Source: Lepidodermella squamata (Eukaryota; Animalia; Gastrotricha). Taken from it: 64,000 nt of DNA. A program made the translations under genes and the position numbers. Below are positions 45,532-54,819 of the stretch, in pieces. The notes under the pieces are model-generated. The model ran no database searches. It saw nothing but the letters and a program-made list of their open reading frames with translations, and was not told the DNA's origin. The stretch's first letter is position 1; the number at the start of each line of letters is the position of its first letter. The stretch is from NCBI GenBank assembly GCA_047495785.1, contig JBLDXI010000036.1:1054001-1118000 (forward strand), read 5' to 3'.

Positions 45532-46031
45532 TTAAATAACGAATAAAAGGGTTAGGTATTGAATTAAATGAAATTTGGTACCGGCGTGAGATTTTCCCGG
45601 GACCCTTATGTCGTTTTTCCTTATCAGTTCGGCTATCAGTTTCTGAAGCTATTTTTTTCTAGTAATGTTTTAGTGCGACACGTGTAAAAACGGACATCGC
45701 CTTTTTCAAGCGAACAATTGATGTGCTGGCGCCTCGGGTTCAATTATCCACAAACGCCACATTTTCAAAGCTCGGGTTTATTCATTTAATTTTCGTTCAT
45801 TCTTTCCGAGATTTAAAAACCGATTCGCAATGTTCGAGCTCATTTGCTAAGTGCCACAGGCGTTTAATCATGGCACAATTTTGCGCTTATCGCCGTGTTT
45901 CAGCCCTACTTTCTCATCATGTTCATGATAAGACTTTGTTGATCGCAATTCCTGATGACTTCTTATCATAATTTTGACATATGCCGCATGGTGTTATTTC
46001 ATTTTTACAAAACATTTTAATAGATAAAAAC

Positions 46032-49000
46032 ATGGAATCTGAATTTTTCTTCTTTTTAATTCTGGTGATTCTCCAAGGTCTGTCGATCGTCTCATCTGAA
46101 GACGGGTCTATCCCAGAAATCTTAGATAGCATTGACTACATTGAGGTTGACTCGAATTTCAACTTTGACGATGCAGATCTCCTGCCAGAGTTGGCAACAA
46201 GCAAAATCGGAACTGTTGTATACAACGTTTGTTTGAATTTTGTTCTTGAAACAGGTTTAACCTTGCTCAACTTCAGGAATCAATCTACTTTGCTCCTATT
46301 TTTGTATCTGAAACAAATTCATCCTATATGAAACGCATGCCCCTGCCAAACTATGCTGTGTTCAAAATCGCTTCGATTGAAGTTGACAACAAGACTGAGG
46401 CGATCGCAGACATGAAATATCGCTTCTACTCATCGATTGGCGTGTGGCAGGAACTGATTCAGACAAAGCAAGGGATCAAAATATCCTCAGTTTTTGGCTG
46501 CACTTTCGACTCCAAACATTCTTACTTCCATTATATGACCATTATAGCCGAAGGGAAGTTTTTTGGTTCCACGGTTCGATTTCATCAAAATGAAAGCTAC
46601 GCCAAACTTCTCAGTGATGGTAACTTTAGAGTTACCATCAATAAAACCTTCGAGACAGTGGCTAATCGGAGATTCAGGTGAGCTATTTTTAGTTCTAATC
46701 CTGCTTATTTGTTGACCCCTCAGAATTTCAAAAACTATTAAGGATATAGTGATCCTGTGAATTTTCGAATTACTGAAAAACGAGACTCCATACTCTATGC
46801 CAGGCGTAGTCAATCGTGGCGATTTTCGCCAAATTTCGAGTTTTTCAACATCCGCTAAAATTTCAACCAAATTTCACGGAAATTTGAGGAAAAATACATT
46901 GAATGAAGGGGGATTGTTTGATATTAAATTAGTCATCCGTAATACATAGCATAAAGGAATTTTTGCGTGTCGAATGACCTTGTGACTAGGCCTGCCCTAC
47001 GTGTTCGCTCAATGAGCGGAATTGTAATTTTGTCGTCGTTGATTTTTCAAGGTGGCCTGCAAAAAAGATTTAATGCTATACATACTTGGTATAAAACTTT
47101 ATCTTCCATTCCAGAAAAGTCGAATTCTTCGATTCGCAGAGCTTCAGTTCCGCGACCATATGTGTAAACAGCAGTTTTGCTCTTGACGACAAACTCTCAT
47201 TCGATTTGCCAATCACTTCCGAGATATCTGAATCGGCAGTATCTTTCCTGACTGTTGATCAGTTGCCAGTAGAAGCTCAAGGCGAAATGGAGTTTCTGAT
47301 GACCTATCCGTTAATATCAGCTAGAGCTTTGTTCAAAATTCAAATCGGCGGATGGCAGTCGTATCACATTGGTGGTAGTGTCAATGTGAAAGGGAAAGGT
47401 TAGTGTATTAAACATTTCAATAATCCTGAGGTCGTTTTCAGAAGAGCCTTCTACTTTCATCAGGACCTCAGCAAGCTGTAATAAATAGAGCGCTTCAATC
47501 CGCATACTATCAAGTTTTCAGCCAAATCGTCGCAATCTCGAGATCCAAATTAACATCCTCGCAGGAAGTAAAATATTTGTACGGAGCTTCCGCGTGTGGC
47601 CTCGGCCGCGGATCATCCCGGCGCCAGTTCGGGGGCCATCGAATTGTGGAGCATGACATTTTTCTCTTCCAACCTGTAGCTTGGCTCCATCATGAACTCG
47701 CGAACCAGATGATGATGCTCTTCTCACCAGCCGCAACCGGGTCTATAATGACCTCCTTCGAAACTGCGCAAGGGGAAGAAGAAGTCTTCGATACGGCCCC
47801 GACCTGGTGTCAACACTGCTCAGAGCAAGGCATCTACAGCGACGGCCTCTTCAGTTTTGCCACCCGGATTCTTTACTTCATCACTGGGTCGAAACCTCGT
47901 TCTGATATCTTGCTCGAAAAGAACCGCAATATTAATGAAAAATTCATCAGCGAATTATCGAAAGATAGCAACAGCTTCATATCGATTAATGGTGTTACTG
48001 GGCCGGATGAACTTCACATGAATCAGTCGAATAACTTGGTTACCAATATCCTTGGCCAACTCGCAGTTCACTTCACGCAGTACCTGTGTTGCCTAAATCG
48101 AGAGCCAATCGATGACGAGTTGTTGGACTGTGCTAAGCGGATAAAGTTTCCGTTTGATAATGTTACAAAGATCAACTATCAGTTTGATGGTTTCACTTTG
48201 AATGATGCGATCTCCCAGGCTGATGCTCTCCTGGCTCACTTTCCAGTTGGATACAACTTCTCTGGAAGGTTCCTCGAGCAAGCCCCGCCTGAGATGTTGA
48301 GAAAGGATATTGATGTAATGATAATCATTTTCATGGTGTTAAAACTGCCTCTCTATTTTTGAGATCTCAGATCTCAGCGCTAATGATCGCTGATGTGATT
48401 TTAATAATTACACTGCAATTTTTTACTAAATCAAGTTCGATTCCACATGATGATGGGAAAATCGATGAGAGACTTACACAAGGTTCCATCCCGACATTAT
48501 AGGCTTTGGCGCTACCTTTCAACCAGGGTGCGACAACCCAGCTTTGGGACTTCAACCAGGGAAAGTCCGCAAAAACCTTTGGGGGGATCCTTTGGTCTCT
48601 CCGGCTGGGTGCTAGAAAACACCTCATCTCCCGGATCCTGCTCCGCACCCTGTCCCCAACACACGTTTGTTTAAGATGCAGAACTTCGTTGTAATCTTAA
48701 TATTATTGATTCACCACCATGATGGTAAGGCGATGAAGGATAATCTTAATATTGTTCATATCAGACTCAAACGATACATTCCACTAATACTCATGACTAA
48801 AACCGCTTTTTCACAATATCAGCAGGCTTTTTACTGTTCAGAGGCAACATCAATTTCACTAATCAGTTAATTTCATGATATCGGCAGTCCAGAAAGCCAA
48901 ACACGGTTTCGAAGTAGAATCCCCGAACTAGGAGGTATTATCGGGCCCACATTTTACGACCAATTTTATGAGACATCTGTTATCTTTTCCGTAATTTCCA

Positions 49001-51835
49001 CCTTGGCCTGTCGAACTGAGTGTAATACCTACACCTCATTATGCTCATTATGCAAATGTCTTACTTTCTGCTTCGCTTAATTCCTAATTATCTGTTAATG
49101 TTATAATCAAATGACATCTTGGTTTTTAGAACTACAATCGTCGCTTCGGGAGAACTTCCGTTGGTGGCGTTGGAATCGTAGAAATTCCTGCGACCTCACT
49201 ATCAATCAAAGCCATTCTTGAAATGCAGCTGGCCACGGTGTCTTCATTCGCAACTGGGAGGAAGGATTTCGAGAATTTACTGCAAAACTACCAATCTGGC
49301 CCGTTTATCATCTGGAGAAACGTGACCGATGCGAAAAATGCAGCAATTGGACACACCTATACCGCGGCTGCATTCCTGGGTGTTCTCATGTTCGGATTTG
49401 GCGGGCTCCGAATAAGGACTAATCGGGTCGATATTCAACAGCCATCGTTACCGGAAGGCATTGACAACCTCACACTGTCACAAATCGCATTTCTAGGCTA
49501 CGAAGTCAACTATCACGTTAATGCATCGCATATTACCTTGTTTTCGCTTACTGATAGCTTCAGGAAAACAACACGGCTATTCAGTCGAATGAAAAACGGG
49601 TATATCCCACTGACATCGGCTGTGGTTTCGCTGGAAATCCCACCAGTGCCCGAGACATCTGATACGACTGCGGCGATTTACTCTTTCATAGCGGATAGCA
49701 GCTCGAAGTGCGTTTTGGATGACCGAAACTACAACAGCCACAACCCGTACTATTCTGTGGACGAAGCCGAGGACAATTCCAAAAATTCAGGTATCTCTAG
49801 CCAATTCAGTGTAGGAAGGATCCTCGAAGTGGGGTACCTTTGAGCTAGCTTCAAGTATTTACGGTCCCGAGTTTATCGGACCAAAGCAGTGCGCTAGTGG
49901 TATAGCTAGTGGTCCCCCACACTACGTCAATGCCAAGGTGGAAAACACCAACAAGACCCTTTGGCCATATCGGGGCACGAAAACACTGCATAGTTCGGAT
50001 CCTACATCGAGCACTGAATGGTCCCCCTTTGGGTTTTCAGGTTTTTTGTCTTCGCCATTCGAGCTGGGTAGTGCACGAAGTAGGATCCTCGAACTAGGAA
50101 GTGTTTTGGGGCCCCGATATTATGGCCAAAGGGTCTCTCCGTGGTTTCCACCTTGGCCTCGTGGCCCCCATTCCTCCCGTACTTCGCGCACTGGAGCTGG
50201 GGGTACTGTTCCCACTTACCCCCGTACTTCGAACACTTCGCCAATTATTAAAGTGTATTTGTGAATTTAAGATTCTGGAGACGATCAACTGCTCCTGATC
50301 ATTTTGACATCCGCATTCGGCGCCATCGTCGTCATAGTCTTAGGGCTTGGGTTCCTCTATCGAAAACGGTTTCGAAAAAAGGCGGCTAGTATTGTAGCGA
50401 ACAGCGATTCCAGCTACATCGTACCATTCGCAGACTTCACAAAGCTACTCGAAGGCATGGAAGGCGCACAAGATCTCATCATCCTGATCGAGCGAATCAA
50501 CGTTTGCAACGACTGGCTCGAAATAACCGGCATATTGGGAACTGGCCACTACGGCGCCGTGCAACGAGCCGTTCTCCGCATGCCTGGGCAGAGCGAGCAG
50601 GACGTAGCTGTTAAAAGCCTCCGGCCTGACGTCAAGTCCGATTTTGTTGGCCTTATCAAAGAAGCCCATGTTATGAAAGACTTCGACCACGAAAACGTTC
50701 TGCCGCTCATCGGAATCGCGATCCTCCACGACCAGCCGCACCTGATCGTGCCTCTCATGCAAAATGGGACTCTAAAGGAATATCTGAAGCCGAAGAAGTT
50801 GGCGGATGTTAGTTACAGCGAAAGGATGCGGTTCATCACCCAAATTTGCGATGGTATGGTGTACCTTCATTCAAGGAATTGCCTTCATCGAGATCTGGCA
50901 TGTCGCAATGTGTTGCTGTCTAGCGATTTAACGTGTAAGATTTGCGATTTCGGCCTGTCGCGAGTGTTGGAGCAGGAGGATGACTACTATCGAACGTCGA
51001 CGGAGAATGAGTACGCTGTTCCGGTCAGGTGGCACCCGCCCGAGTCGGTGATGCGGAAAATCTTTGTTCTCAAGAGCGATGTTTGGTCCTTTGGCGTTGT
51101 CGCCTGGGAAATTTTCACAAGTAAGGAAACAAAGTTCGCTAAATCTTCTAAAATAGTTCACCTGTTCGAAAGTTTTAATTCCCGAGAGACAAGTATATTT
51201 CAGTTCATTGATTAAGCAAAAGAATCCTTCCATGAGAACAAAAAGAAGAAGATAAATTGTTCAACCCGGAAAAATACCGGAAAAGTCACTTTCGGGTTTT
51301 CCAGTTTTCTTTAGCTCTGTAAATGATGGAAACAGTGTAGGATCTTCGAACGAGGGAATATTTTCCACCCGGAACTTGTTGACCAAAGGTTCCCTTCGGA
51401 GGTTTATTCGGGTTTCCCAGCCTGGAACTTTCGAACCTTTTGACCAAAGGTTCCCCTCAGTGGTTTATTCGGGTTTCCCAGGACCTTTCGAACATAGGCG
51501 GATATGAAACCCCTTTACTATGGAAATTCATGATGTTGAAGGTTCAGTTAAAAGATGTTATTTCTTCTTACAGACTGCGAACGCGAACCTTACGACCAGC
51601 TTCAAGCCATGGAGGTTATTTTCAACGTTTGCCACGGTTTTCGATTGCCAAAGCCACCGGCGTGCCCAGATAAAATGTAAGTGTACAGAACATATCGAAC
51701 AATATTCTCTAATAATTTTCATTTTCTAGCTACGATTATATAATGGCGAAATGCTGGCAGCAAAATCATGAAGATAGGCCGTGCTTCAAGCAGATTCAGG
51801 AAATGTTACAAGACCAAGCATTCACCCATTGTTAA
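46032..51835 (+). CDS. Receptor tyrosine kinase with GH65/PGGHG-like ectodomain (~1167 aa)
   Basis: Exons 46032-46226, 46277-46677, (46750-46803 uncertain), 47115-47398, 47464-48314, 49130-49790, 50272-51120, 51574-51676, 51730-51835 join in frame. Signal peptide; GH65 motifs GVTGPDE, SQADALLAHFP, FLGVLMFGFGGLR; TM LLLIILTSAFGAIVVIVLGLGFLY; kinase GTGHYG, VAVK, HRDLACRN, DFG, YY, SDVWSFG. Confidence 0.85.
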
Positions 51836-51951: not shown

Positions 51952-53274
51952 TCAATCCATGATAACGCGATCGGTTATCGATTCCAATATCGGTTTCGTT
52001 GGCAGAGTGAAATTCAGCTCAATCAGCGATTTTGTATCCAGCTGGTTGTAGGTTTCAATCAAATTTCCATCCCAATCGTGATCTTGCTTCTTCTCAAGGT
52101 GTCTGAAATCAGTCCATTCAGGATTCGGCCAGCTGACTAGGTTCCATTTCTTCGCTAAAAGGCTGAAAATTGTTTGATCATGACGATTTTCTTTAAAATT
52201 CGGCAATTCGTCCCTCAACTGGCTGGGCTCATCGGTTAAAATTCGCGGGTCTTGAGAATAGGTCAACCATTCGCTAACGAAGCGTATCGAGTCGAAAGAT
52301 CGGCGAAGCATGACGTAGGCGCCGTAGATTTGCATGGTTTCGTTAATTCGAGGCATTAAATGTTCGACATTCAACAGGAGATAGGCGTCGGATTTCGACC
52401 ATGGAAATTCGGGAAATCTTTGGTAAAATACAACAATATCTTGCTCCAGTTGAGCCTAAAACGAAATTCATAAAATAAAAATAGAATGGAAAAAAATCGG
52501 GAAAAAATTTTAAATTTAAATTTTTGAAATTTTTGAATTTTTGTAATTAAATTTCAAAATGTATTCAGATTTAAGATTTTAAATATTTTTTTAACTATTT
52601 TTTAAGGTGGGAAGTTAGAGGAAAAAACCCGAGGAAAAAATCTGGGTATCAAATTTCAATTTTAATTCAATTTTCGAATTAAAATTTCGATATTATGAAT
52701 TTGTTCGAGATCGAATGCTTACCTGTAAGCAAACAAACTCTTCCAAATTATTGATAACAAATTTATCCGAATCTATGTAAAGCATGACATCGGATTCGTC
52801 CAGCTCCAATAGAAATTTGAGAATCAAATAGGGTTTCCACAACCAAAGCCCACCGCCGCGTTCGATCGAGATGATATCCCGATTTTGGGCTTCAAAATGA
52901 TCGTCCAGTATCGGCTTAGCGACTACAACGCAAATATCGATTCCTGAAATTTTAACAGCCATTTCACAGTGCTTCTTAGCTTCTTCAAGGTACCAGCCAT
53001 GCGTAGCGCCTGTTACAACGATTCTATGTCCTTTAACTAGGCTACAACGCTCATTTTCGGGTAAAGTCATGTTTGGTAGCTTCAGGGGCCGATAGATGAA
53101 GATTGAGCCTGGGGCACTTTTCTCCGCAATTTCGTCGATCCATTTGAGAGAATTTTTCGGGAAAAGCTGGTTTTGAAGGTCATTAATCCAGCTAGTAGCG
53201 AGGAGATAGGTCAGGAGGAGTAGACCAACCAGTTTCGGAAACAAAAATTTCGATTGGCGAATCATCAGGCTCAT
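51952..53274 (-). CDS. Putative GT-A-fold glycosyltransferase, type II membrane protein (351 aa)
   Basis: Exons 53274-52723 and 52455-51952; N-terminal TM; motifs RGGGLWLWKP, LYIDSD (DxD), WSKSDA, NRHDQTIFSLL. Confidence 0.7.
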
Positions 53275-53697: not shown

Positions 53698-54705
53698 TCA
53701 GAATTTCTCAGGCCTGTAACCGTCATTTTGCGAATCATTCGATCCAATGAAAGCCATCCAATCGCTGCGCCAGGATTGACTCGAATATTGAACAACAAAA
53801 GACCCAGGGAAAAGCTGTTTGCAAGCCGCTTCATCGAAAACCGGCGACAACCCAGAACAAACTGGTTTCACCTTAGCATCTTTCCACGAAAAAGGATGGA
53901 GAACATTTTTCGGAAAAATTCGCAAATCGTAAATAAATTCCGAACAATTGTACAGCGACCCGGCCGGCTCGATACCCGTCATTTCCCGCCTCACGGCAAT
54001 GTAGCTCAAAATCGAGTTGAAAAACGCGACGGGGCCGGTGATAAAAACCGGCCTAACGTCACGCCTCGCATATTTCTCGGCCGCAAATTGAAACTGGGTC
54101 AACGCGATAGAAAACAGCAAATGGCCGGGCTGCGCCGCCATAACACTCGCTGGGACGAAATTTTTGTCCAAATCCTCCTCAAATTTTTCCATCATATAGC
54201 CGAGTAGGACAGGGTGAGCTTCATCGGCCACCAGGGTGTCTAATGGCTGTAACGGCTCCGTGTCCAAATCCGCATACATCCCGCCGTAGCGGTGCATATA
54301 CAAAATTCGGCTAACGTCAGACTTCATAACGCCAACAGGCAGCGAGTCGTAGAAATTGAGGAGGTAAGGGTAGAATTTAGCGACCAGGTCACGGTTCATT
54401 GCGTCCGTCCATAACTGGTGCGACCAGGCTGGGTGAAGGTCGAGCCACGTTTTTCGGTATCTCGCGTAATTTTCCGGTAAATTATCCGAATTTTTCCAGG
54501 TTTGATGAAGAATTTTTGGAATTTTCCCGCCGAGCGAGGCGGCGATTAATTTCGCATCGATCGAATCGAAATCGATTTGTTCCGAATTTCCAGGATCAAA
54601 TGCTGATAATAAATAGCAAATAATTATTGTGGAGCTGATTAAAATTATTGATATTAGAAAATTGAAGCATTTTCTCAGCTGAAAATCACTTGCATTAAGC
54701 AACAT
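53698..54705 (-). CDS. GT32 glycosyltransferase (MIPC synthase SUR1/CSH1-like), intronless
   Basis: N-terminal TM; IPKILHQTWK, LWTD, SDVSRILYMHRYGGMYADLD (DxD), TGP. Confidence 0.88.
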   Translation of the reverse strand: MLLNASDFQLRKCFNFLISIILISSTIIICYLLSAFDPGNSEQIDFDSIDAKLIAASLGGKIPKILHQTWKNSDNLPENYARYRKTWLDLHPAWSHQLWTDAMNRDLVAKFYPYLLNFYDSLPVGVMKSDVSRILYMHRYGGMYADLDTEPLQPLDTLVADEAHPVLLGYMMEKFEEDLDKNFVPASVMAAQPGHLLFSIALTQFQFAAEKYARRDVRPVFITGPVAFFNSILSYIAVRREMTGIEPAGSLYNCSEFIYDLRIFPKNVLHPFSWKDAKVKPVCSGLSPVFDEAACKQLFPGSFVVQYSSQSWRSDWMAFIGSNDSQNDGYRPEKF

Positions 54706-54819
54706 TTTTTCGAATAAAAATAAAAACAATAAATGTTGTGTAGCAATTCAAGCGTGGCACGCGATTTAATTTTCGACGTGAATTCATTCATTTTTATTTT
54801 TGTTTTTCACCACGAAAAA

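Follow-up and report, generated by a model that had tools for sequence, protein, structure and literature searches.

What becomes of a glycoside hydrolase domain when it forms the outer part of a receptor kinase? This question is raised by a gene in a 64,000-nucleotide stretch of the Lepidodermella squamata assembly (contig JBLDXI010000036.1, positions 1,054,001 to 1,118,000; hereafter the window), which has the character of eukaryotic DNA with short introns. The gene lies on the + strand within 46032-51835, and its product is predicted to be a type I receptor tyrosine kinase of ~1149 residues, the whole ectodomain of which would have the GH65 fold, in the order N-terminal beta-sandwich, (alpha/alpha)6 barrel, and C-terminal beta-sandwich. 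We propose, with a probability of roughly 70%, that the GH65 ectodomain no longer hydrolyses and that selection maintains it as a non-catalytic part of a receptor tyrosine kinase with intact motifs. Searches, folds, trees, and rate estimates were all done per exon, or on a paralog that has the same region in a single exon.

Homology to GH65 and replacement of catalytic residues

The open frame at 47430-48359 matched the GH65 central domain (PF03632) with 24.4 bits (E 1.7e-5), below the 27-bit gathering cut-off, and kinase-less paralogs exceeded that cut-off with 53 and 47.8 bits. In a phmmer search of the same frame against the PDB, human PGGHG (9sd4-9sd8) was matched with an E value of 2.5e-15 (9sd5), and the alignment paired the PGGHG motifs FWDQD, SPDEYH, and KQAD with IVEHD, GPDELH, and SQAD, respectively. 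The exon frame 49130-49840 alone returned nothing relevant from the PDB by phmmer, whereas a profile built from the family's 13 copies of exon 5 did match PGGHG, with IWRN opposite VWTE. Similarly, hhalign aligned the family profile with a profile of 12 canonical PGGHG-like proteins at 99.1% probability (E 6.9e-19), pairing the family Asn with a Glu that is invariant in all 12. By sequence similarity, in both the phmmer and the hhalign comparisons, the ectodomain is thus a member of the GH65 superfamily. Entries 9sd5 and 9sd6 are, by their PDB titles, the E574Q and E430Q/E574Q mutants of PGGHG, and both sequences show WTQ. Because the PDB chain index equals the UniProt numbering plus one, the aligned residues are exactly D301, E430, and E574.

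Papers citing Hamazaki and Hamazaki (2016) state that substitution of D301, E430, or E574 abolishes the activity of human PGGHG (PMC11012932, PMC10077716). FjGH65A, whose structure was the first of a GH65 hydrolase, uses Glu472 as its acid and Glu616 as its base; <0.1% of the activity remains in the E616Q variant, and Glu at the base position is fully conserved among the hydrolases of GH65 (PMC8626586). The universal residues of the -1 subsite include F342, W343, D344, K596, and Q597, and Y337 hydrogen-bonds the base (PMC11442529).

The general-acid Glu (48009-48011; PGGHG E430, CsKP E483) is kept within GPDELH (48000-48017). At the position of the general base (PGGHG E574, FjGH65A E616), profile alignments place an Asn (49319-49321), the last residue of WRN (49313-49321), within WRNVTD (49313-49330), with Arg just before it, Asp at +3, and an N-x-S/T sequon around it. 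Phe (47628-47630) takes the place of the base-bonding Tyr (CsKP/FjKH Y337), as it does in all 13 members that have the position. IVEHD (47643-47657) stands in place of FWDQD by the phmmer alignment, with loss of the Phe-Trp platform and replacement of D301 by Glu (47649-47651), and SQAD (48213-48224) stands in place of KQAD, with Ser for the -1 subsite Lys (CsKP K596) and the Gln (Q597) kept. In CsKP numbering, F342, W343, D344, K596, and Q597 are therefore Ile, Val, Glu, Ser, and Gln here; the Gln alone is kept, and the Asp-to-Glu change is conservative. The catalytic acid found throughout GH65 is present, and the base Glu and its partner Tyr of GH65 hydrolases are absent.

Since the base, its Tyr partner, the hydrophobic platform, and one residue of the KQ clamp have been lost together, canonical alpha-glucoside hydrolysis is very unlikely. 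Likewise, three of the six universal -1 glucose-binding residues are gone, which makes canonical alpha-glucoside binding unlikely. A hydrolase-dead ectodomain is well supported.

An earlier note on this DNA had read the motifs IVEHD, GPDELH, SQAD, and WRN and had concluded that the acid was kept and the base lost. All four motifs lie on the + strand where it placed them, alignment now provides their PGGHG counterparts, and the conclusion is strengthened by the accompanying changes in the Tyr partner, the Phe-Trp platform, and the Lys. Two details need adjustment: D301 within FWDQD is replaced conservatively by Glu rather than lost, and the span assigned to the domain (47630-49400) contains the motifs and also an intron (48315-49129). 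The broader interpretation, a pseudo-enzyme coupled to an intact kinase, agrees with our analysis. Its binding-only, lectin-like pocket is plausible, although the replaced -1 subsite residues weaken the case for ancestral-style glucose binding.

Could the domain instead be a phosphorylase? The phosphate site of GH65 phosphorylases comprises K/R330, S631, S632, and H675 (PMC11442529), and these positions together with Y337 read Arg, Pro, Ala, His, and Phe here, two of five being kept. The Arg (47607-47609) aligns within GLGRG at the CsKP K330 position and is invariant in all 14 family members. The His (49352-49354) is also invariant and aligns with FjKH F625 and with CsKP H675, the phosphate-site His of phosphorylases, although the family-profile-versus-PGGHG alignment shows an alternative register for it. 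We rejected a GH65 phosphorylase identity on the Ser-Ser, Tyr, and -1 subsite positions, and the extracellular location makes phosphorolysis implausible.

Predicted fold

The fold was predicted with AlphaFold2 on a single-exon paralog (L013:3451-5088), using an input alignment of family exons and canonical proteins. The resulting model, with a predicted template modelling score (pTM) of 0.85 and a mean predicted local distance difference test score (pLDDT) of 77.9, has a helical barrel followed by a beta-sandwich. Foldseek ranked human PGGHG first (E 3e-20, TM 0.67), then FjGH65A and GH65 phosphorylases, with GH95 and GH94 lower. The paralog is thus predicted to have the GH65 architecture, an (alpha/alpha)6 barrel plus beta-sandwich superposable on solved GH65 structures.

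Kinase domain and predicted membrane topology

The frame at 50271-51212 is a strong tyrosine kinase match (PF07714, 215 bits) and is joined by two further small kinase exons. The motifs GTGHYG, VAVK, the alpha-C Glu, HRDLACRN, DFG, DDYYR, WHPPE (for the usual W..APE), SDVWSFG, and the C-terminal CW...RP are located at 50538-51095 and in exons 7-8. It had been claimed earlier that the kinase keeps every catalytic motif and an activation-loop YY, and this is borne out, DDYYR included. At the motif level, the domain therefore has what is expected of a catalytically competent receptor tyrosine kinase, and the closest solved kinases among PDB sequence matches are EGFR, JAK, Eph, and choanoflagellate RTKC8. 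Hydrophobic stretches are read near 46032-46100 and at 50289-50360, the latter followed by RKRFRKK.

For the kinase exon, the genome yields at least 68 matches below E 1e-20 (428 candidates at first look), many of which form tandem clusters; for a genome of 121 Mb, this would be a very large set of tyrosine kinases.

A divergent family in which the base was probably lost before the kinase was gained

When the 121-Mb assembly of the organism itself was searched in all six frames, 13 copies of the barrel exon were recovered, corresponding to 11 receptor genes and two kinase-less relatives. The receptor genes are the window's gene (contig C36), a close paralog on C42 (synonymous divergence, dS, 0.27), and nine genes in tandem on C30, where a kinase exon follows the barrel in nine of nine copies. 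Both kinase-less copies are on C15 (L013:3292-5088 and L014; G000:C15:4761k and 4776k), and in L013 the entire barrel and the C-terminal domain occupy a single 599-codon frame.

Beyond this genome, HMMER was run exhaustively against 1.84 billion representative proteins, and a single protein fell below E 1e-30, P0001. This protein of 796 amino acids, from a eukaryotic metagenome contig (L027:10001-12391), is kinase-less and 44% identical to the C15 copy. The other matches that were read (16 of the top 22) have the canonical FWD, PDE or a close variant, KQAD or a variant, and W[TSY]E. No kinase-bearing version from outside this genome was recovered by this search, and a look-up in the ESM Atlas gave generic GH65 clusters only. 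A PF03632 search of the 121-Mb genome found no canonical PGGHG; it found the divergent family and a third GH65-like gene on C59 instead. We regard the family as a divergent, lineage-restricted offshoot of animal PGGHG-like glucosidases.

The third gene (L024:394-2969; G000:C59:170021-172596) is more divergent, with a PF03632 score of 39.6 bits. It reads GPYDQS where the family reads GPDE, the acid Glu being apparently lost, and it may be a second, independent pseudo-GH65 of this genome. On the P0001 contig, the neighbouring genes are of the ankyrin-repeat, ELO, and SSF types.

Several of the substitutions seen in the window's gene are shared throughout the family. WRN is present in 14 of 14 members, as is Ser for Lys, and the base-position Asn lies in an N-x-S/T sequon in all 14, with Thr and Ser interchanging. 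Asp at +3 from this Asn is found in 13 of the 14. The acid Glu is kept in every copy of this genome (13/13) and is Lys in P0001 (TDKLH). The former catalytic loops contain clusters of new invariant residues specific to the family (SACGLGRG, WRN-x-[ST]-D, and GH-x-x-TA). Through them, two Arg residues and a His occupy the sites of the base in hydrolases and of phosphate binding in phosphorylases.

A maximum-likelihood tree was built from the exon-4-equivalent region only, with one copy containing an internal stop excluded and canonical proteins on the other side. It supported the family at 100/100, the receptor clade at 99/98, and a kinase-less clade that includes P0001 at 93/91. As Asn occupies the base position in all 14 members, kinase-less ones included, the loss of the base is older than the kinase fusion. 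In L013 and P0001, NYNSHNPYY is followed by a short, hydrophobic C-terminal tail that resembles a glycosylphosphatidylinositol-anchor, tail-anchor, or membrane-anchor signal. By parsimony, the base would have been lost once, in a kinase-less, membrane-anchored ancestor, with kinase fusion and tandem expansion following later. Moreover, the fact that P0001 is without the acid too argues that the family does not need catalysis.

In-frame stops occur in the six-frame matches of several paralogs, namely in the barrel exon of C30_1297, C30_1316, and C42 and in the kinase exon of C30_1190 and C30_1312 (G000:C30:1190k-1337k, G000:C42:782k-787k). Some of these stops may lie at the ends of exons, and the tandem array may include pseudogenes that account for others.

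Selection on the ectodomain

Ratios of nonsynonymous to synonymous divergence (dN/dS), estimated by the Nei-Gojobori method, were 0.14-0.35 and 0.14-0.17 for the first and second barrel exons, respectively, and 0.03-0.14 for the kinase. Between the window's gene and its closest paralog, at a dS of ~0.27, they were 0.35 and 0.17 for the two barrel exons and 0.03 for the kinase. The GH65-like domain is not decaying; it is under purifying selection. Positions equivalent to the active or phosphate site are strictly invariant in 6 of 15 cases, compared with 72 of 497 columns overall (Fisher p = 0.013, 14 sequences), and the acid Glu and the Gln are additionally invariant among this genome's copies. 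The positions of the former FWD triad, by comparison, vary among paralogs.

A dead enzyme as a sensing module?

How, then, might such a domain serve a receptor? We suggest that the hydrolytic machinery was dismantled (base Glu to Asn, base-positioning Tyr to Phe, Phe-Trp platform and -1 Lys replaced), while the general-acid Glu, the Gln of KQ, the Glu of the +1 'WE' pair, and a carboxylate at D301 were kept from the ancestor. The resulting non-hydrolytic module, probably through a remodelled pocket or surface, would bind an extracellular ligand and control the intact kinase. In terms of history, the membrane-anchored, kinase-less ancestor that had already lost the base would have been joined to a transmembrane and kinase module and then amplified to 11 genes. 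Perhaps a remodelled, partly basic pocket beside the kept Glu binds the ligand; or, perhaps the rigid GH65 body acts as a dimerisation scaffold. That dN/dS is below 1, that pocket positions are invariant, and that a new Arg/Arg/His set surrounds the base site are indirect indications that some pocket function has been retained.

It is tempting to go one step further and speculate that the dead PGGHG-derived pocket was re-tooled, by way of the invariant Arg/Arg/His beside the acid Glu, for an anionic or glycosylated cue of the extracellular matrix. Candidate cues would be sulfated or phosphorylated glycans and glycosylated collagen, the substrate class of the ancestral enzyme. We regard this extension as tentative and, as it stands, rather improbable.

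Several points weigh against a non-catalytic ectodomain, or against the confidence with which it can be proposed. The acid Glu, strictly kept in all 13 copies of the genome, could mean that chemistry is still done. In GH95, a structurally related (alpha/alpha)6 family, the base is an Asp-activated Asn (PMC11943901), and Klotho, which is without a catalytic Glu, has a disputed residual activity (PMC11696049). The modelled paralog is only 36-37% identical to the window's two barrel exons, and in its model the loops with K330-Y337 and the base position have pLDDT <50, so that a carboxylate, for instance the conserved Asp at +3 in WRNVTD, may conceivably have shifted to where the base was. Finally, the single sequencing run that contains the receptor-gene stretch also contains the introns and is not recorded as RNA, and no RNA run was found.

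Among the alternatives, the one that fares best dispenses with a ligand pocket altogether. The base-position Asn may be N-glycosylated, or the pocket otherwise closed, so that the GH65 body would be a rigid scaffold or a module for dimerisation, with its ligands, if any, bound elsewhere. The sequon in 14/14 members, with Thr/Ser interchange, speaks for such a role, as does the loss of three of six universal sugar contacts. GH65 enzymes are typically oligomeric, a habit that would suit kinase activation by dimerisation. However, a buried Asn may escape glycosylation, and the invariance of R, E, S, Q, N, and H at former pocket positions goes beyond what an unused, closed cavity would need. On balance, we consider a closed pocket unlikely.

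A little less probable still is that the ectodomain remains a glycosidase, possibly of new specificity, in which an Asp-activated Asn (WRNxTD) or the Glu replacing D301 substitutes for the base. The GH95 precedent is pertinent here, the more so as GH95 is also among the fold matches (PMC11943901), and purifying selection, the invariant acid Glu of the 13 genome copies, and the Asp at +3 in 13/14 members would all be in keeping with retained chemistry. Yet an E-to-Q change at the base kills both FjGH65A and PGGHG (PMC8626586, PMC11012932), and here the Tyr partner, the Phe-Trp platform, and the -1 Lys have gone together as well. In addition, P0001 has neither the acid nor the +3 Asp while keeping the rest of the family signature, and the former FWD triad varies among paralogs.

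That the gene is a decaying or unexpressed duplicate whose substitutions are neutral drift is highly improbable: the missing RNA run and the in-frame stops of some paralogs are outweighed by an open frame in eight of eight exons, whose splice sites are canonical and whose summed length is a multiple of three, by the low dN/dS values against the closest paralog, and by identical substitutions fixed across a family at 40% identity.

We therefore continue to favour a hydrolase-dead ectodomain that is maintained as a non-catalytic part of the receptor. If so, one genome holds a natural series, from enzyme-like ancestor to membrane-anchored dead enzyme, kinase fusion, and tandem expansion. Such a family would offer a testable case of a catalytic pocket turned into a sensing surface, as well as an example of how new receptor tyrosine kinases arise through domain shuffling. 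Were the ligand a matrix or collagen glycan, matrix sensing would have arisen independently in a receptor tyrosine kinase here; and were the pocket re-tooled as speculated above, the 11 genes would constitute a discoidin-receptor-like set of matrix-sensing kinases, independently evolved from a pseudo-enzyme in cis.

Gene structure and neighbourhood

The receptor gene comprises eight exons totalling 3450 nt (1149 codons plus stop), all introns being GT-AG with compatible splice phases and the reading frame kept throughout. Exon 1 (46032-46226) is an open frame, kept in paralogs, that supplies the start codon, a signal-peptide-like hydrophobic N-terminus, and the start of the N-terminal domain; its GT donor is at 46227 (phase 0), and an alternative in-frame ATG is possible upstream at 45981. 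Exon 2 (46277-46677; AG acceptor 46275-46276, donor 46678, phase 2) carries the N-terminal beta-sandwich part of the GH65-like ectodomain, with tblastn matches to 10 paralogs. The remainder of that domain is in exon 3 (47115-47398), which begins at the sole phase-compatible acceptor after exon 2 that fits the onset of paralog similarity. An open frame at 46761-46946 was rejected as an exon, as it has no acceptor in the required phase and shows similarity only in the closest paralog.

Exon 4 (47464-48314), delimited by the PF03632 and PGGHG matches and splice sites, encodes a linker and the first two thirds of the barrel, including the D301 equivalent, the acid, and SQAD. Exon 5 (49130-49790), placed by hhalign and splice sites, encodes the barrel's last third, including the base loop, together with the C-terminal beta-sandwich and NYNSHNPYY, a conserved juxtamembrane motif. 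The two are separated by an 815-bp intron (48315-49129) that opens with GT at 48315 and closes with AG ending at 49129, both in phase 0. At the same place, tandem paralogs on C30 have ~45 bp, and this length suggests an insertion into the window's copy; the closest paralog, on C42, likewise has a long gap at this position.

Exon 6 (50272-51120), the source of the PF07714 match, encodes a predicted transmembrane helix (50289-50360), a run of basic residues as a putative stop-transfer signal, and the larger part of the tyrosine kinase domain, DDYYR included. Exon 7 (51574-51676; PF07714 profile positions 200-233) continues the kinase C-lobe, and exon 8 (51730-51835; profile positions 235-258) contains the end of the kinase domain with the CW...RP motif, a short tail, and the stop codon, both exons being bounded by splice sites. 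Within the intron between exons 6 and 7, two adjoining 49-nt direct repeats (51372-51481) are 90% identical at a spacing of 61, and peptide units like those of the translated repeats are found in other introns of the gene.

Downstream, a gene on the - strand (53701-54729) encodes a DXD-motif glycosyltransferase (PF04488, E 3.6e-16), and two further open frames on that strand, 51955-52374 and 52696-53274, match nothing in Pfam.

Comparison with known systems

The reuse of pseudo-enzymes as receptors is not new, as Klotho with FGF receptors, chitinase-like lectins, and plant chitinase-related kinases already show. Our literature search found no paper on a complete GH65 ectodomain in cis with an animal-type receptor tyrosine kinase.

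By both sequence and fold, the closest relatives are PGGHG (ATHL1) and the invertebrate PGGHG-like proteins, with which the ectodomain has several features in common: the domains follow one another in the same order, the acid is still the Glu in GPDE, the Gln of KQAD is retained, as is the Glu of the PWES pair, and PF..W still frames the base loop. Unlike PGGHG, it has Asn for the base Glu, Phe for Tyr, IV for FW, Ser for Lys, and GH.YTAAAF for NF.TG.GGF, and it belongs to a membrane-bound receptor fused to a tyrosine kinase, with a Pfam score of 24.4 against a gathering threshold of 27. GH65 phosphorylases (CsKP 3WIQ, LbMP 1H54, and BsGGP 4KTR) are likewise without a carboxylate base and share the Arg at K330 and the His at H675; in the family, however, Pro-Ala/Gly stands in place of the two serines that bind phosphate and Phe in place of the Tyr, and the -1 residues are replaced.

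At the level of function, alpha/beta-Klotho provides an instructive parallel, as a GH1-like glycosidase fold without one catalytic Glu controls a receptor tyrosine kinase, the FGF receptors, at the cell surface (PMC11696049, PMC10229096). There is no homology between the two: Klotho is a GH1 TIM barrel and a separate co-receptor acting in trans, whereas here the (alpha/alpha)6 GH65 domain and the kinase form one polypeptide. Another parallel is CHRK1 of tobacco, one of the plant chitinase-related receptor-like kinases, in which a GH18 ectodomain lies in cis with a transmembrane helix and a cytoplasmic kinase (PMC5485988). The gastrotrich receptors differ in having GH65 rather than GH18 and a tyrosine kinase rather than a plant Ser/Thr receptor-like kinase, and are of independent origin.

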